From positions 124,001-188,000 of the forward strand of contig MCFE01000052.1 of the NCBI GenBank assembly GCA_002104905.1: DNA of 64,000 nucleotides, written 5' to 3'. Both the position numbers and the translations under genes were made by a program. Numbering within the stretch: position 1 is the stretch's first letter; each line of letters begins with the position of its first letter. Below, piece after piece: positions 1 through 12,431 of the stretch. The DNA comes from Basidiobolus meristosporus CBS 931.73. Lineage: Eukaryota; Fungi; Basidiobolomycota. The notes beneath the pieces were generated by a model. That model saw only the letters and a list, made by a program, of their open reading frames with translations, ran no database searches and was not told the DNA's origin.

Positions 1-1387
1 AAAAGCGAGCTAAAAAGTAGGTGGGCCCACTTCATAAAGATGGTAGAGAAATCCGGAGTATACAAAGGTGCTAACGATGTTTAATTGCCATTGATAATAG
101 GTGGTAAAATCCACCGTGTGAAAGAAATTCAACCATTCCCAAGTATCACAAATCATGGGGTGAAAGTTCGATGGAAGACTCTATACGCGTATCTCATAAA
201 CTTGTTCACTTGCTCAGAGTCATGTGGACAGTGTTTCGAAATACAAATGATGATGCATGTCTAGTGTTGGATGTAGCGAATTTTAGCGATCTAACTAGTA
301 GTAGTGTATTACTAGACCTACAGAGCACGTTCTATCATCTGGTTTATGTCATCAAATTGGCACAAATCCAAACAAAATATGCGCTGTGAATGGACAAATA
401 GTAGTGGTTAGATTAGATCTCCCGGAAGAGGTGTTACAGTTCAATTGTTCTCCAAGGGCTACCACCCCATCCTGAATATGGACCATACTGCCGTGACGAA
501 GTCCTGTCAGTCAAGAAGTGGGCCTCCCACAAGGAATCAGAATTGCATTGTGTCACTTTAAGCTAGGCTAATTTGTTGGAAATTCATTTGACTAGTGGCT
601 TTGTTAAAAAGACTTCAAACTGTGCGCTTACCCTCTAAAACATACTCTTGCCAAGAATCTACAAATATCCCTTTTCACTTCATGAATTTTCTCCGGATAC
701 CCAAAAAGTAATTCACATGCTTCGGGCCCAAACCCTACAGAAAGATGCTAGTTCTTATGAAATAGATTAATGCAACTTGCCAATCGACTAATATTTTAGC
801 GCTTTGTGACTGATTTATGTATTTGAAGGAGCATTTAATCCTCAGATACAAAATTCACCCAACAATGAGCTCATGATTTACAAAGAACACATTTGAATAG
901 AAATATCTGGTGATAGTTCAATTATCGGGATGTTCGATTCTTACAGAATTCCCTGTAGAAAACAAAGTACCTTCCAATATCCACAGCAACCTCTTCGATT
1001 AATTTGTTTCAGTCTGGCACTTGTGGTTGTAATGCAATCAGATATATGCACTTTTTAAGTTTGGTTTCTTCAGGCTAATTCCCGTTGGAGTCTGGCCTAT
1101 CCAATGTGTGAGTACAATTTCAAGCGAATTATGACATAGATTTCAATAGCCAGTTTTAGTGGAATCCAAGCATTTATGAATCCACTGGTACATCTTGATA
1201 TGAAAGCATTTGCCAGTAAAGATAGCTCTAATGTTGGTAAATATTTCCGAAACACTCTATATGCTGTATTTTAGGGTTGCTCAATGAAAGTTGCCTTCAT
1301 GTTGAGTTTATTTAACTACTATATTGATAAGTTGGTTTCATCAGTCTCATAAAATTACTATGCTCAATAGAATCGATTCTTGGGTCA

Positions 1388-2419
1388 TTACGTCAATAAG
1401 ATGGTAACTAAGCCGAAGACAATACCGCCTAAGTAAACACCGCCAATGTTGGAAGATGCGCCACTTTTAGGAGTTGTAGTTGGATTGGATCCACCAGTTG
1501 TGGTGCTGGAGTTAGACTGTTGCCCTGGGATCAACACTCCATCTAGAACATGAACTACACCGTTGCTTGTGAGTACATTCGCAGTGACCACCTTGGCCCC
1601 ATTGATGGTCACACTCCCATTGGCGATCTTCACGTTCAGCACATTCCCCTGCACTGTGGTCAGTTTGTCGCCATCCTTGAGGTCGGTGGAGTACTTGACA
1701 CCTGGACTGACCACATGGTACTTGAGGACGTTGGTGAGAGCGGTGGCATTCAGCGAGCCAGCATTGGCCTTCTTGAATGCCTCATCCACTGGGGCGAAGA
1801 TGGTAGCACCCTTCAGCCCGTCTACGGTTTCCACAAGATTGGCCTTGGTGAGAGCATCCACGAGGGCGGTGAGATTGGCATTGGACGCGGTCTGGCTGGG
1901 CTTCACCGGAGGCAACAGGACCTGATCAATGATGTGAATCACACCATTCGATGACTCGAGATCAGCCTTGACAACATTGGCACTCTTCAGTCCATACGCC
2001 ACTGTGACCCCCTTGTCACCCTTGGTCACCCCCACCACCTGGCCCTTGCCGTCAGGAAGGTTCACCAAACTAGCATCAGTTAGCAGAGTGGTCGGGAACT
2101 GGATTGCTTGGAGATCGGCCGACTGGATCTTGCCAGAGATGACATGGTACTTGAGGACATTCTCCACGAGTGCAGTGTTGGATGTGTCGATGTTTGCCGC
2201 GGTGAAGGCGGCATCGTTCGGGGCAAACACGGTGAATGGACCAGCACCAGATAAGGCGGTCTTGATGGCACTGAAAGCGGGACTGCCAACAATACTGGCC
2301 AAGGTTTTGAGGTCAGAGTTAGCGACAGCGTTGTCGACTATGGACTTCTGAGCATCCTGAGCAACGGTACTTGCAATCAAGGATAGAGCAACGGTAGATA
2401 GAAATAGTTGGACTTTCAT
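1388..2419 (-). CDS. Fasciclin copy A: signal peptide + 2 FAS1 domains + S/T linker + GPI-anchor-like tail
   Basis: Intronless 343-aa ORF with hydrophobic N-terminus MKVQLFLSTVALSLIA. FAS1 motifs FTVFAPNDAAF, LKYHV and NGVIHIIDQVL, then IFAPVDEAF, LKYHVV and NGVVHVLDGVL. Ends in a small-residue site plus hydrophobic tail (SGASSNIGGVYLGGIVFGLVTILLT). Confidence 0.93.
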   Translation of the reverse strand: MKVQLFLSTVALSLIASTVAQDAQKSIVDNAVANSDLKTLASIVGSPAFSAIKTALSGAGPFTVFAPNDAAFTAANIDTSNTALVENVLKYHVISGKIQSADLQAIQFPTTLLTDASLVNLPDGKGQVVGVTKGDKGVTVAYGLKSANVVKADLESSNGVIHIIDQVLLPPVKPSQTASNANLTALVDALTKANLVETVDGLKGATIFAPVDEAFKKANAGSLNATALTNVLKYHVVSPGVKYSTDLKDGDKLTTVQGNVLNVKIANGSVTINGAKVVTANVLTSNGVVHVLDGVLIPGQQSNSSTTTGGSNPTTTPKSGASSNIGGVYLGGIVFGLVTILLT

Positions 2420-2986
2420 ATTTGTATGTTAGATATGCCTGGTCAACTCGGGTGGATTTTATATGGTTCAGCAAGTCTGATGGAGTTATTATCCTTTCGA
2501 TTATTCGATCCAGGGGTATTCACTGGAATGAAAAAATACCAAAACTGTACTGAGTCAGGATCAGTGAACATATTAATCATCATTATATCGACACTCTCCT
2601 TAGTACAGCTCGATCAAATCGAGTTGTGACAATTGCCAAGGTGTGTGCAACCAAATATATCGTAAGTTTGAAGTACGAATGCCTACCCCCATCGAATATT
2701 ACAATGATAAATAGAGGATTCAGGATTCCCACAACCACACGTCTCAATAATAGAAAGTTCCTTTCATCGAAATAAGCTTTCATCAGTGTCTGATCTCCCA
2801 CCACTCCAATTTCCTCAGCAAATATGCACAAGACCAAAATAATAATGGATGCTCGATTGGGCTAGTATTGTCCGGATATCATACCTGACCTACCATGAAC
2901 CTTATTTCACCTTGCATAATTACAGCCATTAAAATGATATATAAAGGGTTTACCTGTTGAAGTGGATCCCAACAATCTCAAGATAA
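2420..2986. promoter_or_regulatory. Divergent intergenic/promoter region between fasciclin A and B
   Basis: Lies between two head-to-head ATGs. TATATAAA-like box near 2937. Homologous in blocks to 7237-7942. Confidence 0.6.
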
Positions 2987-4021
2987 ATGAAAGTCCAACG
3001 ACTGCTATCTACCGTTGCTCTATCCTTGATTGCAAGTACCGTTGCTCAGGATGCTCAGAAGTCCATAGTCGACAACGCTGTCGCCAACTCTGACCTCAAA
3101 ACCTTGGCCAGCATTGTTGGCAGTCCCGCTTTCAGTGCCATCAAGACCGCCTTATCTGGTGCTGGTCCATTCACCGTGTTTGCCCCGAACGATGCCGCCT
3201 TCACCGCGGCAAACATCGACACATCCAACACTGCACTCGTGGAGAATGTCCTCAAGTACCATGTCATCTCTGGCAAGATCCAGTCGGCCGATCTCCAAGC
3301 AATCCAGTTCCCGACCACTCTGCTAACTGATGCTAGTTTGGTGAACCTTCCTGACGGCAAGGGCCAGGTGGTGGGGGTGACCAAGGGTGACAAGGGGGTC
3401 ACAGTGGCGTATGGACTGAAGAGTGCCAATGTTGTCAAGGCTGATCTCGAGTCATCGAATGGTGTGATTCACATCATTGATCAGGTCCTGTTGCCTCCGG
3501 TGAAGCCCAGCCAGACCGCGTCCAATGCCAATCTCACCGCCCTCGTGGATGCTCTCACCAAGGCCAATCTTGTGGAAACCGTAGACGGGCTGAAGGGTGC
3601 TACCATCTTCGCCCCAGTGGATGAGGCATTCAAGAAGGCCAATGCTGGCTCGCTGAATGCCACCGCTCTCACCAACGTCCTCAAGTACCATGTGGTCAGT
3701 CCAGGTGTCAAGTACTCCACCGACCTCAAGGATGGCGACAAGCTGACCACAGTGCAGGGGGATGTGCTGAACGTGAAGATCGCCAATGGGAGTGTGACCA
3801 TCAATGGGGCCAAGGTGGTTACTGCGAATGTACTCACGAGCAACGGTGTAGTTCATGTTCTGGATGGAGTGTTGATCCCAGGGCAACAGTCTAACTCCAG
3901 CACCGCAACCGGTGGATCGAACACGATTTCCATGAATTCAGCCGCTTCCCTTTACCCACATAGCATATACATTTCATTAGTATTGTATCCAGTATCATAC
4001 TTGATTAATAACTCATTTTAA
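2987..4021 (+). CDS. Fasciclin copy B: signal peptide + 2 FAS1 domains + divergent hydrophobic tail
   Basis: 344-aa ORF with core near-identical to copy A. Tail SNTISMNSAASLYPHSIYISLVLYPVSYLINNSF shows no clear similarity to the A/D tail. Confidence 0.92.
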   Translation: MKVQRLLSTVALSLIASTVAQDAQKSIVDNAVANSDLKTLASIVGSPAFSAIKTALSGAGPFTVFAPNDAAFTAANIDTSNTALVENVLKYHVISGKIQSADLQAIQFPTTLLTDASLVNLPDGKGQVVGVTKGDKGVTVAYGLKSANVVKADLESSNGVIHIIDQVLLPPVKPSQTASNANLTALVDALTKANLVETVDGLKGATIFAPVDEAFKKANAGSLNATALTNVLKYHVVSPGVKYSTDLKDGDKLTTVQGDVLNVKIANGSVTINGAKVVTANVLTSNGVVHVLDGVLIPGQQSNSSTATGGSNTISMNSAASLYPHSIYISLVLYPVSYLINNSF

Positions 4022-4395
4022 CACTTTCAATGCCCACTTAAACCTTGGTTGAGCTGCAGCAACAAAGTTACTGACACTTTAATCTGAACCGTTTTAATCT
4101 TGTATGTGATATAACAAAGATATTTCTTCCAAACCATCCGATAGGTTTTGTTTGCATGATGTAACATTGAAAACTTAAACCTTTATATATCAGCTGCCAG
4201 TCCTTGTATTTAGAAAATAGATCCTACTTACCATTCTCATTTACGACCAGCTCAATTGTGAGCACAGGTAATACAGCAACATGCAAGAGTTGTAATAAGG
4301 GGAGCCGACAAAAGCCCACAAATTAATATAGCTTTTTAGATATTTTGGAAACACTTATTTTGCTTTATTTTGCTGCAAACATGCTTTGGACCTTA

Positions 4396-5322
4396 CTAAA
4401 CTGATGAGGTGTGGTTCGACTTCTGTCCTGGGATCAACACCCTATCCAGAACATGAACTACACCGTTGCTTGTGAGTACATTCGCAGTGACCACCTTGGC
4501 CCCATTGATGGTCACACTCCCATGGGCTATCTTCACGTTCAGCACACCCCCCTGCACTGTGGTCAGCTTGTCACCATCCTTGAGGTCGGTGGAGTACTTG
4601 ACACCTGGACTGACCACATGGTACTTGAGGACGTTGGTGAGAGCGGTGGCATTCAGCGAGCCAGCATTGGCCTTCTTGAATGCCTCATCCACTGGGGCGA
4701 AGATGGTAGCACCCTTCAGCCCGTCTACGGTTTCCACAAGATTGGCCTTGGTGAGAGCATCCACGAGGGCGGTGAGATTGGCATTGGACGCGGTCTGGCT
4801 GGGCTTCACCGGAGGCAACAGGACCTGATCAATGATGTGAATCACACCATTCGATGACTCGAGATCAGCCTTGACAACATTGGCACTCTTCAGTCCATAC
4901 GCCACTGTGACCCCCTTGTCACCCTTGGTCACCCCCACCACCTGGCCCTTGCCGTCAGGAAGGTTCACCAAACTAGCATCAGTTAGCAGAGTGGTCGGGA
5001 ACTGGATTGCTTGGAGATCGGCCGACTGGATCTTGCCAGAGATGACATGGTACTTGAGGACATTCTCCACGAGTGCAGTGTTGGATGTGTCGATGTTTGC
5101 CGCGGTGAAGGCGGCATCGTTCGGGGCAAACACGGTGAATGGACCAGCACCAGATAAGGCGGTCTTGATGGCACTGAAAGCGGGACTGCCAACAATGCTG
5201 GCCAAGGTTTTGAGGTCAGAGTTGGCGACAGCGTTGTCGACTATGGACTTCTGAGCATCCTGAGCAACGGTACTGGCAATCAAGTATAGTGCTACAGTAG
5301 ATAGTAGTGCCTGGATTTTCAT
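4396..5322 (-). CDS. Fasciclin copy C: signal peptide + 2 FAS1 domains, no anchor (predicted secreted)
   Basis: 308-aa ORF with the same core. Stops 11 codons after VLI (PGQKSNHTSSV*), with no S/T linker or hydrophobic tail. Confidence 0.9.
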   Translation of the reverse strand: MKIQALLSTVALYLIASTVAQDAQKSIVDNAVANSDLKTLASIVGSPAFSAIKTALSGAGPFTVFAPNDAAFTAANIDTSNTALVENVLKYHVISGKIQSADLQAIQFPTTLLTDASLVNLPDGKGQVVGVTKGDKGVTVAYGLKSANVVKADLESSNGVIHIIDQVLLPPVKPSQTASNANLTALVDALTKANLVETVDGLKGATIFAPVDEAFKKANAGSLNATALTNVLKYHVVSPGVKYSTDLKDGDKLTTVQGGVLNVKIAHGSVTINGAKVVTANVLTSNGVVHVLDRVLIPGQKSNHTSSV

Positions 5323-6201
5323 GGTTGTCTTTGAGATCGGAAAGTTCTTATCTCTCTATCGTCAACTAATACAGGTTTTATATCTCTTTCGGCTCTTCAA
5401 TGGAAGTTTCTGTTCGATTGTTTTAGTTTGAGATGTTGCAAGGTGTCATTCACCTCATTTCTCAATGGCAAGTTATAATCGGTATGAGTCCTCGATCGCC
5501 CGATATAGAGACGTTCAATAGAGATACTGAATAGGGACCAAGGAACGTGAGCGCTAAAATGACCTGGCCTTATTGTACACTCTGGATCGACATCTATATT
5601 ATATTACCTCGATCTTACAAAGTTCCATTGACAGCCAATGGAGCGTGTTAAGCGCTAAAATCTGTGTTAATAACACAGGGATTTGTCGAAATCCTAGGAA
5701 ATTCTTAACACATCCGACTCGGAATTTCAAACAACGATATTCGCTTGATTTAATATTACCACACAAATAGGAAACATACTGACGAACTCCATTGGTCAAT
5801 TTCAATGAAATGGTTACGACCTGCTATACTACATTTTGAAAAGTTTTGATAAACTAACGGTTGGGCTTAAATAGCATATTGTTGGATCACGAAATACGGT
5901 GAGGACAATTCCACATCAATCGTGTTTAAACCGAGCAAATCGATGCACGACAACGTCTTTGATTCATCCAGACTGAGTGTAGTCTCCCAATTAACGCGAT
6001 CACATACATAAAATGGTTTACGTGGTGTTAGTTGCTGTATTATATTGGTTTCTCGTAAGATGTTTGGCGGTACCAATGGGACGAGATATGCTCATAATAA
6101 TGTAAAGTCTAAAGAAATAAGCAAGCTATAAGAATAATGTAGATTTACTGCTACTTGTATTTATTATAATGCGATCGATACGGAAACAACCTCACCATCG
6201 T

Positions 6202-7236
6202 TCATAAAGCAAATGAGATGGCAATTAAACCCAAGAGGATTCCACCAAAGTTGATATTGCCCATGCTGGAAGATGCACCACTTTTAGGAGTAGTGGTTGG
6301 GTTGGATCCACCAGTTGTGGTGCTGGAGTTAGACTGTTGCCCTGGAATCAACACCCCATCCAGAACATGAACTACACCGTTGCTTGTGAGTACATTCGCA
6401 GTGACCACCTTGGCCCCATTGATGGTCACACTCCCATTGGCGATCTTCACGTTCAGCACATCCCCCTGCACTGTGGTCAGCTTGTCGCCATCCTTGAGGT
6501 CGGTGGAGTACTTGACACCTGGACTGACCACATGGTACTTGAGGACGTTGGTGAGAGCGGTGGCATTCAGCGAGCCAGCATTGGCCTTCTTGAATGCCTC
6601 ATCCACTGGGGCGAAGATGGTAGCACCCTTCAGCCCGTCTACGGTTTCCACAAGATTGGCCTTGGTGAGAGCATCCACGAGGGCGGTGAGATTGGCATTG
6701 GACGCGGTCTGGCTGGGCTTCACCGGAGGCAACAGGACCTGATCAATGATGTGAATCACACCATTCGATGACTCGAGATCAGCCTTGACAACATTGGCAC
6801 TCTTCAGTCCATACGCCACTGTGACCCCCTTGTCACCCTTGGTCACCCCCACCACCTGGCCCTTGCCGTCAGGAAGGTTCACCAAACTAGCATCAGTTAG
6901 CAGAGTGGTCGGGAACTGGATTGCTTGGAGATCGGCCGACTGGATCTTGCCAGAGATGACATGGTACTTGAGGACATTCTCCACGAGTGCAGTGTTGGAT
7001 GTGTCGATGTTTGCCGCGGTGAAGGCGGCATCGTTCGGGGCAAACACGGTGAATGGACCAGCACCAGATAAGGCGGTCTTGATGGCACTGAAAGCGGGAC
7101 TGCCAACAATGCTGGCCAAGGTTTTGAGGTCAGAGTTGGCGACAGCGTTGTCGACTATGGACTTCTGAGCATCTTGAGCAATAGTGTTGGCAATCAGGGA
7201 TAGAGCAACGGTAGATAGAAATAGTTGGACTTTCAT
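6202..7236 (-). CDS. Fasciclin copy D: signal peptide + 2 FAS1 domains + GPI-anchor-like tail
   Basis: 344-aa ORF with the same core. Tail SGASSSMGNINFGGILLGLIAISFAL is a diverged homolog of the A tail. Confidence 0.93.
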   Translation of the reverse strand: MKVQLFLSTVALSLIANTIAQDAQKSIVDNAVANSDLKTLASIVGSPAFSAIKTALSGAGPFTVFAPNDAAFTAANIDTSNTALVENVLKYHVISGKIQSADLQAIQFPTTLLTDASLVNLPDGKGQVVGVTKGDKGVTVAYGLKSANVVKADLESSNGVIHIIDQVLLPPVKPSQTASNANLTALVDALTKANLVETVDGLKGATIFAPVDEAFKKANAGSLNATALTNVLKYHVVSPGVKYSTDLKDGDKLTTVQGDVLNVKIANGSVTINGAKVVTANVLTSNGVVHVLDGVLIPGQQSNSSTTTGGSNPTTTPKSGASSSMGNINFGGILLGLIAISFAL

Positions 7237-7942
7237 AGTGGTATGTTAGAATTAGTTTGTATGAGTATCAATGGAATGATTGATATTCATGCCCATTCAA
7301 GTGGCTTTATATGATTTTTTCTTGTATGTTGGGTCGAGTTTATTCGATGGAGATACTCCCTATATTTCCGATCGTTCGATCTAGAGACACTCGATGTAAA
7401 ATTCCCATCGCCATATTCCTGGCTGGACAAGCACAACAGATGGTACTGGATTTGGACCAGCATATTTGAACGGGATGTTTACATTCAGATCGAGATTTGT
7501 TTTAGGACTGCGCGATCATAGAGTACATAATGTCAACTAATTTGTGTCGAGAGTTGCCAAGGGGTGTACAATTTCATAGTGGTTTGTATTCATCGAACAT
7601 TGAAAGATAAATAGTGGACTCAAAAATCACATAATCCCACGTCTCAACAATAGAAAATTCCTTACATCGAGTCTTTTGTCATCAGTCTCTGATCTGCCAA
7701 CACTCCGATTTCCTCCTGGAATTCATCCGGTACACATGGCCAAGATAGTTGCTAATGCTCGATTGGGTGGAAGTCTTACTTTATATGGATTAGTATTGAC
7801 CGGATATTTTACCCAATCCGATACAAACCCTATCTCATTTAAAATACTTGCTGAATTTAGGTCATGGAAATTCCATTGTGTATAAAGCACTATATTATCT
7901 GGTAAAATCAAGATGGTTTCTACAGCGTATTTTATCAGATAT
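7237..7942. promoter_or_regulatory. Divergent intergenic/promoter region between fasciclin D and E, paralogous to 2420-2986
   Basis: Shares ordered blocks with the A/B spacer, e.g. 7606-7670 vs 2706-2770 (12 mismatches in 65 nt by hand alignment). Confidence 0.6.
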
Positions 7943-8681
7943 ATGAAAGTCCAACTATTATTATCTAAATTGGCTATATCCGTTATTATGGGCTACGTGG
8001 TAAGAGTAACCAAGGGTGACAAGGGGGTCACAGTGGCGTATGGACTGAAGAGTGCCAATGTTGTCAAGGCTGATCTCGAGTCATCGAATGGTGTGATTCA
8101 CATCATTGATCAGGTCCTGTTGCCTCCGGTGAAGCCCAGCCAGACCGCGTCCAATGCCAATCTCACCGCCCTCGTGGATGCTCTCACCAAGGCCAATCTT
8201 GTGGAAACCGTAGACGGGACTGAAGGGTGCTACCATCTTCGCCCCAGTGGATGAGGCATTCAAGAAGGCCAATGCTGGCTCGCTGAATGCCACCGCTCTC
8301 ACCAACGTCCTCAAGTACCATGTGGTCAGTCCAGGTGTCAAGTACTCCACCGACCTCAAGGATGGCGACAAGCTGACCACAGTGCAGGGGGATGTGCTGA
8401 ACGTGAAGATCGCCAATGGGAGTGTGACCATCAATGGGGCCAAGGTGGTCACTGCGAATGTACTCACGAGCAACGGTGTAGTTCATGTTCTGGATGGGTT
8501 GTTGATCCCAGGACAACGATCGAATTCGCGTGCAACCAATACTACCAATTCTACAACTGACCCTGAAAGTGCTACGTCTTCTGATTGTGGTGAGCTTCGC
8601 CTTGGTGTTATTTCATTAAGAATAATGATATTTCTCGATTGCTTTCATAAGCGGTCAAATATTTACAATAATACGTATTGA
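7943..8681 (+). pseudogene. Fasciclin copy E: probable pseudogene (in-frame loss of about 109 codons of FAS1 domain 1, +1 frameshift, decayed tail)
   Basis: ATG at 7943. Signal-like MKVQLLLSKLAISVIM is joined directly to GYVVRVTKGDKG, which is codon 126 in copy B. Extra A at 8219 (GACGGGACTGAAG vs GACGGGCTGAAG) splits ORFs 7913-8254 and 8247-8681. Confidence 0.8.
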
Positions 8682-9872
8682 TGATTAATCTATCGACTCA
8701 CCAGAATCGATCAATAGTCGATTAATCCGCAAAGGATGATTTCAATTCACCCCTGAACGATAAAAATTTTAATTATGGCATTTTAAAACCATACCCATAT
8801 AATCGCTTGGGAGTATATTGATTGCCAGAAGCATTCATTATAACTAATGAGGATTAGGTTAGTTCTGATCTGGACTACAGAGGTTCGACGCATTTATAGA
8901 TGTGGATGACATGAACGACTTGTATTTTTCATAAATTTCGGGGCACATTTCAGCTGAATTTGCAACCGAATCACCCTAGCTTTATTGTTGCATCTTTATA
9001 CCAATAGCCTGAGTGTAGCTAGCGGACTTTCTAGAACATTAGTCCGGTGTTCTTTCAAGGAATGTCTGGTCAATTTCCGTAAGATCGTCAGTACCATTCA
9101 GATGATTAATGTTTTTCGGCAGAATTCACTAAAGTCAAAAGCCTAATAATTTGGCATGACCTGCCTCCAAATACCTTCCATGCACACTTCGTCATAGCTG
9201 TTTTACAGCGTACATGCTTTCATGAGAAACTCGTCAGGAAATCTGCCCTAATCACGATCAAGTCTTTGGCCTCATGAGTATCTGACATTGGTTGTTCAAT
9301 TTTGGGACCGGGTTCCATGTGCAGTGCTGGAACGGTGATCCGTATATGGGGCAATCCAGTTTGATGCTATCACGATTGTATCGATATGTAACTTGATAAA
9401 CTATATTTAATAAGCTAATACCACCACATTTATTTGGTAGATTCATATTGAATGAGTGTACACACTTACCAATTCTCCTTTCACACTCTGGACTCTACTA
9501 GTGAAGATCCGGGTAGGCTTGACCTTCTTACAGCAACATTTTCATACTAAGACTCCGGAATGAAGTACAAAAGCACCTCCAGTATATACACTTGCTGCTG
9601 GAGAATTTGTCAGCAAAGATGCCGACACTAAAAACCACTCATATCTCAAGCCCTATTTACTGCATTTCGGCCAAGATATTATGGTGATCTCCAAAAGCAC
9701 ATGATCCCTACAACTATCGCTGAAATGAGTCAGTTTCCATGTACTACGTAAAGTTGCCATCTCGGACTCCATCCATCCGGACACCTTTCTCCTACAACAC
9801 AGCGAAGAATACCGCTTTTTCAACGTAGCCCGAACTTCACAGAACAAACGGCACTGAACCACCACCAACCCA

Positions 9873-10589
9873 ATGCAATTCAAAAAAGTCGGCGTCTGGA
9901 TTCTGTCCATTCTCGCTGCTCTACTAGCGGTGCTTATAGCTGACCATAAGCTGGAGACCTGTCTCATAAGGAACCAACTGTTCAACCTGATGTGGGATTA
10001 TATGGGACCAGGGGTAGATGAATGCTTGACTCCTACCAAACTTTCACTGCTGAAGCAGGTAACAGGAAAGGTAGTGGAGCTGGGACCCGGGCACGGTTCG
10101 AACTTTAAGTACTTTGCCAAAAATAGTGTAACTAAGGTGTACGCCGTTGAACCCAACCTTTCTATGCACCCGAAGCTTAGCTCAACGGCAAAGGACGTTG
10201 GACTTGACGTAGAAATCATCGGAGCGTTGTGGGAGAATTCCAATCTCGAACGTGGCTCTTTCGATACGGTGGTCTCCAACCTGGTGCTGTGCTCTGTGAA
10301 CGATCTGCAAGGTAGCCTAGATCTAATCCAAGATTATTTGAGGCCAGGTGGGGTTTTCCTTTTCATCGAGCATGTTGCCCAACCTAACGGGACTGCCTGG
10401 CGAACCGCTCAAAATCTCATCAATCCATTCTGGAAATACATTGGCGATAATTGCCAGGTAAATCGGGAAACCGGCATGTTGTTGAAAGCCATGCAAGGAT
10501 GGAAAGAAGTGAGCATCGAATCTGAAGACTTATGCGGCGGTATGGGTCTCGTCAACCCAAAAATATACGGGTATGCCATCAAAGCATAA
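9873..10589 (+). CDS. Class I SAM-dependent methyltransferase, METTL7/TMT1-like, with N-terminal membrane anchor
   Basis: Intronless 238-aa ORF with hydrophobic N-terminus. Motif I VVELGPGHGSNF, VYAVEPN, SFDTVVSNLVLCSV, LRPGGVFLFIEHV and DNCQVNR are typical of the METTL7 family. Confidence 0.85.
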   Translation: MQFKKVGVWILSILAALLAVLIADHKLETCLIRNQLFNLMWDYMGPGVDECLTPTKLSLLKQVTGKVVELGPGHGSNFKYFAKNSVTKVYAVEPNLSMHPKLSSTAKDVGLDVEIIGALWENSNLERGSFDTVVSNLVLCSVNDLQGSLDLIQDYLRPGGVFLFIEHVAQPNGTAWRTAQNLINPFWKYIGDNCQVNRETGMLLKAMQGWKEVSIESEDLCGGMGLVNPKIYGYAIKA

Positions 10590-12431
10590 ATGCTCGAGGT
10601 ACATCCAATGTATTAGCTTATCAATAAATAAAGCCACTTGAGAAGATAAACACATGCTACGACCATCCACACATACCAATCAAGAGAATGCCTGTGTTTT
10701 ACAGTGGGCAGCCTGCAGGCTTCGGGTGCTGGTTTTAGAAAGGCAAATCCACGTCATTATGGAGGATGAGGTGCAGGAACATGGAACGGAATGAAATACA
10801 TCCATGTTTCTCTCATGTCAAGCACAGATCTTGATATGAGAAGTCCCGGGCCTCCATTGTTGAACACATTCTTCCGTAATGCATGGATGGGCGCCATTCC
10901 AGCGCCTAAATAGAGCTTCACTGATATTTCGACCGAATCAGAAACGACATTTCCTTATTTCTGTATGGTATCAGTACTTCGATTAGATAAGAGCACTAGT
11001 GTCCAGATAATTGTCTTGGGTAAGGCAACAAATGTGATACACGAGACCTCAAAATGGGCTGGTCCCGGACATGGGATTCCGTTGTGTACTCGGGCCGCCG
11101 AAAACCTTGGCTGTTGGTTTGTTCAAGAGAACCTATAATGACCACTCAGCCTCAACTCGTTTCTCCTAGCTGGATAATGTCCATGGTCTCAGGACAAGGG
11201 GATGTTACGTCAATGAATAAGGCAGAATTAGTATATACGTTTCACTCTATAGTAAGTTGACTACAGAGAGTGGAGTTCATAATGCAGAAGACATCATCCA
11301 CCCTTACGAAAAACAGCAGATTTGAGACCTTGTGACAAGTCATATTGTCCATAAGCCCGAAAACCACTTTTCAGGTTATAATACAAGTCAATATGATCGG
11401 TCTAAAGGTCTACCCCATGGCCCATATTCGAATACAATGGATAAAATTGATCGTATTTAAAGGACATATATAGATACTGTTACTGTGGTTACTATTACTG
11501 TTGCCATTACCATATCTCGACTTGCAAGGTTCACACGGAATTCAACGCAATCTGTTGCGAGGGAATGGCAAGATTCGCCAGCCTAAAGGAAATTACATCA
11601 CTATTCAATCATTTCGGCTTACAATTGGTCACACAGACATCTGGGGCAAACATACAGATTTATCGTTGTATGAAACTATCCGTCAAGGCCATTGGATCTG
11701 CGCGATGTAACTAGAGTTGATTTAGCCAAATGACGAGGGATATTACGATGGATTTACGTATAGTTGGCGATATTATCTTGGTGAAAACACCGCAAACTCT
11801 GATTTTATCATCCGCCAATTGGGACCAGATTCTGTTGATTTCCAATTCGGTGTATCGCTCATGCCACCCTATAGCAACCAATACTCACGGGCTGCGTATC
11901 TATTTGGACACTTGTGTACATGGAAAATCTCCATTGAAACACTGGCCTGTTACGCTGATGTGGATGAGCGCGCGTCGCCTGGATTTCTCATCTGACGAGT
12001 TTGTCAACCAAAGCATAATCTCAACAAATCACTGTCCATTTCCTTTTATGTCGTCGATGTAATATATACCTTTTCCCATTTATATCCACGTTTGAAAAAT
12101 ACACTCTTCCTGAGAGAAATAAACTCAATGGCTTGCCTAAAGTTTGACCTTAATTTACCAATTTAAGTCACAGCGCTATATGAAAACCTTAGTTTGCGTG
12201 AGCTCGATTCAATAAGAATTCCATAGGAACTGTTGGTAGGTTGTCGAGTATAAAAACCCGCATGGGCACCTCTCTCTTGAAAAAACAGTTCGCCCTCACT
12301 TATCAGCTAGAAAGCGGGTATTCATTACATTCTCCGAGAATAGCCTGCTACCAATCCTTCTCTGGCAGCCCTTTCAATTTCTGTTTCGAAAAGGGGTCAA
12401 ATCCATCAAACCTTCAATATCCGCTGTTACG

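Follow-up and report, generated by a model that had tools for sequence, protein, structure and literature searches.

How can neighbouring genes share an almost identical central part and yet differ strongly at both ends? The question is raised by a cluster of fasciclin-like genes in the fungus Basidiobolus meristosporus CBS 931.73. This cluster lies in a stretch of 64,000 nucleotides (nt), positions 124001-188000 of contig MCFE01000052.1, which is called the window here and whose coordinates are used unless another contig is named. An earlier note, made from the letters of the window, had described five fasciclin copies. The listing of open reading frames (ORFs) and Pfam confirmed five tandem-FAS1 genes or fragments within 7.3 kb, named A to E, of which four are intact (A-D) and one is a fragment (E). 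Sequence comparison makes it highly probable that they are old paralogs whose central ~830 nt stay near-identical because ectopic (interlocus) gene conversion recurs. Concerted evolution of this type is a textbook process, and the array adds a well-documented case to it without a new mechanism.

Near-identical cores between diverged ends

The shared core was measured at ~834 nt of the coding sequence (CDS 64-897), slightly less than the ~860 nt of the earlier note. Over these 834 sites, the intact copies differ pairwise at 4 (B/D), 7 (A/B, A/D and C/D), 9 (B/C) or 12 (A/C) positions. The identity of about 99% claimed for A-D is thus upheld, and the estimate of about seven differences between A and B proved exact. 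Not a single site varies among A-D from CDS 127 to 749, a segment that includes the part of B (3130-3720) in which no difference had been noticed before. Two sites vary over CDS 64-749, both synonymous and both private to A; site-by-site comparison of CDS 1-927 gave 47. Three copy-specific amino-acid changes are located at the 3' core edge of copy C. The similarity fades at a copy-specific point, as had been proposed: A and D are ~95% identical to about CDS 972, B follows to about 935, and C and E to about 896.

The ends tell a different story from the core. Synonymous divergence (dS, Nei-Gojobori) among A-D is 0.019-0.032 in the core. It reaches 0.37-0.92 in the signal peptides, save for A/B (0.06), and 0.34-1.8 in the tails. 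The differences in the signal peptides and the strong divergence of the tails reported earlier are visible as a dS of 0.3-1.8 against 0.02-0.03 in the core. When the stretch from A to B was globally aligned with that from D to E, the cores were 100% identical, whereas the intergenic regions reached 30-70% with many indels, and homology stopped at the stop codons of A and D. Judged by this divergence, signal peptides, tails and spacers are old, and the duplication is not recent.

Could the array nevertheless be very young, or held identical by strong selection on codon usage or mRNA structure without any conversion? Purifying selection on the core protein is indeed strong, with a dN/dS of ~0.03 between lineages and species, and the raised GC content at third codon positions (GC3) of the core could reflect the codon bias of a highly expressed gene. 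However, a recent copy would leave the flanks alike, and here, despite their homology, the tails, the signal peptides and the intergenic DNA have diverged heavily. Between lineages and species, substitutions at synonymous sites of this core have reached saturation (dS 1.0-2.5), so that constraint cannot explain the identity among neighbours. Moreover, the broken copy E carries the same perfect core. An explanation by youth or selection is scarcely credible.

A broken copy with an intact core

Copy E starts with an ATG at 7943 and shares ~76% of its first 45 nt with B. Next, CDS 46-372 (109 codons) is missing through an in-frame deletion of 327 nt (junction 7987/7988). Immediately after the junction, 5 of the 21 sites in 7988-8008 differ, which is the level of old divergence. 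From 8009 to 8513, only 4 of 504 sites differ from B and D, and CDS 394-749 is 100% identical to A-D. The 5' edge of the tract is thus found 21 nt inside the deletion junction. An additional A at 8219, seen in the assembly alone, breaks the frame, and the tail is diverged. The public gene model of E (P0008) spans the frameshift by means of an ad hoc intron. Copy E is probably a pseudogene. As a broken gene retains a perfect core, selection at the protein level is not what keeps the core identical.

In copy C, the short tail results from a 2-nt indel that makes a stop, and diverged remnants of the old tail lie beyond it. Part of the tail variation, namely in C, in E and in the weak C-terminus of B, looks like decay rather than design. 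The functional reading of the earlier note, a constant-core/variable-tail surface-protein system in which localisation and promoter modules evolve freely, thus gains no support from these copies.

Signatures of recombination

Several lines of evidence point to conversion as the process behind this pattern. Copies A, C and D are on the minus strand, B and E on the plus strand, and all share one core; hence, unequal crossing-over cannot be the homogeniser. A Sawyer-type permutation was run with 10000 shuffles, for which polymorphic sites were obtained by adding the sequences of a sister locus (see below) and of B. ranarum. The longest concordant runs covered 265-336 polymorphic sites in all six A-D pairs and were reached in at most 1 of 10000 shuffles. 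The test for conversion fragments suggested in the earlier note is therefore significant for every pair. Four-gamete violations occur at both core edges (sites 16/48, 852/882 and 852/897). With the same permutation, exchange between the two paralogous loci was not detected, the longest concordant runs being 5 sites (p ~0.25).

The central idea of the earlier note, repeated conversion of old paralogs, fits the dS contrast, the tract ends, the mosaics, the inverted copies, copy E, the second locus and the trees alike. A literature search found no paper on gene conversion in Basidiobolus.

Support for the assembly

The genome of CBS 931.73 was assembled from PacBio reads (PMC7466969), and consensus errors arise in near-identical repeats. 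Divergent cores might have been made to look identical during polishing, or copies might have been collapsed and re-expanded. This was examined with Illumina-derived k-mer (31-mer) contigs; two DNA runs of the same sample contain about 0.9 of the sampled words. The contigs cover every unique spacer with 0 differences from the assembly, and one of them crosses the end of copy C (3875-4473), also with 0 differences. They stop exactly 30 nt beyond the last copy-specific base, the point from which a 31-mer no longer tells the assembled copies apart, at 2391 (A CDS 29), 3034 (B CDS 48), 1514 (A CDS 906) and 6331 (D CDS 906). The deletion and the core-to-tail junctions of copy E are seen in them as well (joint 2045->2395, loose end 4424). 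A core contig specific to A (2264-2350) is separate and has a depth of 151, compared to 524 for its equivalent shared by B, C and D. By depth per contig, which is a rough measure, the deeper core contigs reach 500-760 and the spacers 230-300; the core is thus 2-3x as deep as the flanks, or 3.5-5x as deep as the A-specific core contig.

The Illumina contigs support the assembly at the boundaries and support a multi-copy core. The excess of just 2-3x over the flanks would suit an artefact. Contigs that agree without a difference and branch at the predicted bases of several boundaries do not suit it, nor do copy-specific core variants in contigs of their own or the presence of the E junctions. 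A like pattern at the second locus, and the more fragmented B. ranarum assembly, which breaks inside these genes, speak against it too. An assembly or polishing artefact is very improbable.

A second locus and a second species

A paralogous block is found on contig MCFE01000054.1, with a cyclin, a fasciclin pair, a P-type ATPase and an RRM protein. At the nucleotide level, the genes that flank the pair match their window counterparts at 73-77% and are thereby about as distant as the B. ranarum orthologs (61-80%). The two fasciclins of this sister locus stand head to head and are ~99.3% identical over ~1,080 nt. The tract begins 45 nt upstream of the ATG and ends ~45 nt short of the stop. Sequences beyond it cannot be aligned, or are homologous but have diverged. 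The cores of the two loci are just 65-70% identical to each other. The pair appears to be an independently homogenised second case. As an observation on annotation, the gene on the plus strand is listed as 'partial' (292 amino acids, aa), and its full ORF of 345 aa occupies 9965-11002.

In B. ranarum, one contig (L001) carries a cyclin, an outer fasciclin and then the fasciclin P0007 at the position of A, and another (L002) carries the fasciclin P0002 upstream of a methyltransferase, as E does. In maximum-likelihood (ML) trees of CDS 405-897, genes A-E formed one clade. P0002 grouped with the sister-locus pair with support of 98/98 in these trees and of 100/99 on CDS 64-897. Forcing a clade of the plus-strand (ATPase-side) genes worsened the log-likelihood by 393 (approximately unbiased (AU) test, p 1.5e-8), and forcing one of the minus-strand (cyclin-side) genes worsened it by 386 (AU p 1.9e-7). 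A forced clade of the two B. ranarum genes was rejected (p 0.008), and a forced clade of P0007 with A-E was not (p 0.12). These tests imply that at least two core lineages predate the species split. On the trees, each of the two loci of B. meristosporus today carries just one of these lineages. The cross-species comparison called for in the earlier note thus has the cores grouping by locus, with the clades by position and strand rejected by the AU test.

The B. ranarum contig L002 shares the methyltransferase with the window locus and a 197-aa gene with the sister locus. This gene of 197/198 aa lies to the right of the methyltransferase in B. ranarum (L002:6222-7336) and to the left of the cyclin in the sister locus (L003:3925-5029), which means that the region was rearranged between species or loci.

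In the B. ranarum assembly (GCA_040143965.1), both contigs end within fasciclins, at L001:1-664 (~CDS 370) and L002:1-994 (~CDS 38). Repeated fasciclin sequence may therefore have interrupted this assembly as well. Three further runs with the same species label (X4-X6) contain next to none of the 31-mers of a 6-kb stretch, the conserved core included, so the isolate behind them must have diverged considerably from CBS 931.73.

Proposed history and template

The alignments suggest that D/E arose by an old duplication of an ancestral head-to-head pair, A/B, and that C was added. Later conversion would have replaced the core in each of the five copies, the broken E among them. In such an event, a break or gap in one copy would be repaired by homologous recombination without crossover, with a neighbouring copy in either orientation as the template. 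Tracts would begin within the common core and stop where identity drops too low. If so, the signal codons, C-terminal tails, promoters and spacers escaped and diverged, and the end points vary among copies. The unconverted ends are most simply explained by homology too low for tract extension. As a benefit, the dosage of an abundant wall protein may be considered, or none at all.

The outer fasciclin serves as an internal control. It is only 1.35 kb away from A and ~52% identical to the core at the nucleotide level; it has been left out of the homogenisation and shows background GC3. In B. ranarum, an ortholog of 357 aa occupies the same position (L001:1171-2244).

The donor might also have been cDNA, if reverse-transcribed mRNA of one copy recombined into the others and homogenised transcribed or coding sequence. 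Such donors have been argued for in fungi, for ribosomal-protein paralogs (PMC6993855). Homogenisation in the window is indeed confined to coding sequence, and the tract of the sister locus begins ~45 nt upstream of the ATG, a plausible start of a 5' untranslated region (UTR). Nevertheless, the window tracts leave out all UTRs as well as ~63-126 nt at the start and ~100-140 nt at the end of the CDS, so that the unit is not the mRNA. cDNA primed from the polyA tail would favour the 3' end, which is exactly the part left unconverted. Furthermore, close inverted and direct repeats are classic substrates of DNA-templated conversion. A cDNA donor is therefore considered unlikely, and a genomic DNA template with a non-crossover repair route would be the more natural assumption.

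Several points weigh against conversion from genomic DNA as proposed here. The genes are intronless, which makes a genomic and a cDNA donor indistinguishable. Conversion events were not seen directly; what is shown is how identity is distributed, that sites are mosaic, that cores cluster by locus and that a second locus behaves independently, with a single B. meristosporus strain as the source of the arrays. The core depth falls short of the 4-5x naively expected over the flanks, unless it is calibrated on the GC-rich A-specific contig. The read support is not independent of the sample, being drawn from k-mer contigs in which the copies are collapsed, and is no substitute for long reads across the array. 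For the sister-locus pair, a recent inverted duplication of the gene alone is conceivable; the last ~45 nt of its CDS, which are homologous but diverged, run counter to this.

Base composition

GC content is 0.55 in the core and 0.33-0.40 in the flanks. GC3 follows the same trend, being 0.65-0.67 in the core, while the signal-peptide codons have 0.33-0.38 and the tails 0.41-0.43, and the contrast between a GC-rich core and AT-rich tails and flanks described earlier is hereby borne out. In the comparison with further genes, a core GC3 of 0.65-0.72 stands against 0.49-0.50 in the unconverted outer fasciclin and 0.44-0.56 in other genes of the window. At the sister locus, where the tract covers the signal peptide and most of the tail, GC3 is higher in these parts (0.48 and 0.60). 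The B. ranarum fasciclins likewise have a higher GC3 in the core than in the tail, and the segments compared are short. Raised GC3 within tracts fits GC-biased conversion without proving it, as an abundant protein's codon bias would likewise raise it.

Two other causes were considered. A bacterial origin is not favoured as the reason for the GC-rich core, since the unconverted outer paralog has background GC3. Mutation of the flanks resembling repeat-induced point mutation (RIP) was rejected by reasoning, as RIP targets the repeated part rather than unique flanks. RIP is not known outside Dikarya.

Protein type and comparison with known systems

All copies begin, by inspection, with MK(V/I)Q..LSTVAL..AQ followed by D. 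Averaged over the last 17 residues, Kyte-Doolittle hydropathy is 2.1-2.2 in A and D, 0.98 in B and -0.39 in C, which has no hydrophobic end. Such ends might yield anchored and secreted forms, or they may reflect decay. The array is predicted to encode secreted or glycosylphosphatidylinositol (GPI)-anchored tandem-FAS1 (fasciclin-like) proteins. Their closest solved relatives are the FAS1 domains of TGFBIp and periostin (E 1e-38). Fungal fasciclin-like proteins, MoFlp1 of Magnaporthe oryzae (GPI-anchored, tandem FAS1) and LeFlp1 of Lentinula edodes, have been reviewed (PMC6032426). The array proteins resemble them in the putative signal peptide, the FAS1 domains (two, as in MoFlp1), a Ser/Thr-rich stretch and, for A and D, the hydrophobic GPI-like C-terminus. 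However, a close sequence relationship to the array genes is not established, and the MoFlp1 and LeFlp1 genes are not reported as homogenised arrays, unlike A-E.

The best 120 named protein-search matches outside Basidiobolus were all bacterial FAS1 proteins (Bacteroidota, Balneolaceae and others) with 34-49% identity. Other fungi were absent from these 120 matches. Basidiobolus has been reported with ~5% candidates for horizontal gene transfer (PMC7466969), and a bacterial ancestry of the fasciclins is possible, but the word-based search is no fair test of it.

None of the runs on record as RNA contained the stretch. One run of the same study with another organism label (X3, 27 Mb of contigs) holds a 909-nt high-depth contig that corresponds to D CDS 57-959 (6278-7180) with 4 differences. 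This contig may be transcript-derived and partly chimeric, which would mean strong expression.

The array can be placed beside two known systems. Arm-to-arm conversion occurs in close inverted repeats, for example in Drosophila hsp70Aa/Ab and in the palindromes of the human Y chromosome. As there, the head-to-head pairs (A/B, D/E and the sister-locus pair) would have become near-identical by intrachromosomal non-crossover recombination, with spacers that are not homogenised. The fasciclin tract differs in being ~0.8-1.1 kb long and inside the gene, and direct as well as inverted copies up to ~6 kb apart share one core. The other system is that of duplicated fungal ribosomal-protein genes, which evolve in concert through gene conversion (Mullis et al. 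2019, PMC6993855). Both cases concern old paralogs with homogenised coding sequence and diverging non-coding parts, which cluster by species or locus. In contrast to the ribosomal-protein genes, which are dispersed ohnologs, the fasciclin genes are clustered in tandem or inverted order and code for cell-surface proteins. Moreover, they are intronless, and their tracts cover the middle of the CDS only.

The pattern might extend beyond fasciclins. Unusually pervasive ectopic conversion limited to coding sequence may affect many unrelated families in B. meristosporus, with raised GC3 in the tracts and with the two fasciclin loci each fixed for a different ancient core, both of which B. ranarum keeps as distinct genes. 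This wider proposal is offered as a tentative one that is rather doubtful at present. If true, an early-diverging gut fungus would offer a natural system, outside Dikarya, in which to measure the rate of conversion, the length of tracts and GC bias. The array itself is a teaching case, as it unites direct with inverted copies, a pseudogene that was converted, tract ends that differ by copy, a diverged neighbour that escaped conversion as control and a sister locus. In practice, paralog trees in Basidiobolus will mislead on the age of duplications. Genes of this kind will interrupt short-read assemblies, as is seen in the B. ranarum contigs, and RNA-seq reads will multi-map on them.

Layout of the array and its neighbours

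The gene order is cyclin (+), outer fasciclin (-), A (-), B (+), C (-), D (-), E (+), methyltransferase, P-type ATPase, hydrolase and RRM protein. Genes A-E are without introns. The PF02469 profile matches A-D at E 2e-54 to 8e-54 in two stretches per copy, and copy E at 8e-21 in one stretch. A self-megablast of the whole window found no further repeats beyond the fasciclin array. The coordinates are collected in Table 1.

Table 1 Positions of the fasciclin copies, their cores, the intergenic regions and related genes
Feature	Position	Strand	Remark
Outer fasciclin (sixth tandem-FAS1 gene, 352 aa)	1-35	-	first 35 nt only, rest left of the window
Outer fasciclin, full gene	L004:1065-2123 (offset 2088)	- in window	
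Copy A, 343 aa	1388-2419	-	signal peptide, 2 FAS1 domains, Ser/Thr-rich linker, hydrophobic GPI-like C-terminus
Homogenised core of A (CDS 64-897)	1523-2356	-	1671-2293 100% identical to B, C, D
A/B head-to-head intergenic region	2420-2986		shared divergent promoter region; old homologue of D/E intergenic region
Copy B, 344 aa	2987-4021	+	diverged, weakly hydrophobic tail
Homogenised core of B	3050-3883	+	
Copy C, 308 aa	4396-5322	-	stop right after core, without GPI-like end
Homogenised core of C	4426-5259	-	
Copy D, 344 aa	6202-7236	-	GPI-like C-terminus, positional twin of A
Homogenised core of D	6340-7173	-	
D/E head-to-head intergenic region	7237-7942		old duplicate of 2420-2986
Copy E, probable pseudogene	7943-8681	+	
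Homogenised core of E	8009-8513	+	
Methyltransferase gene	9873-10589	+	unique gene to the right of the array, anchors synteny with B. ranarum contig L002
Head-to-head fasciclin pair of the sister locus	L003 (MCFE01000054.1) 8158-9195 and 9965-11002	- and +	

The best-kept block between the A/B and D/E intergenic regions, 2718-2830 against 7618-7736, is ~70% identical and constitutes a candidate for a shared promoter element.

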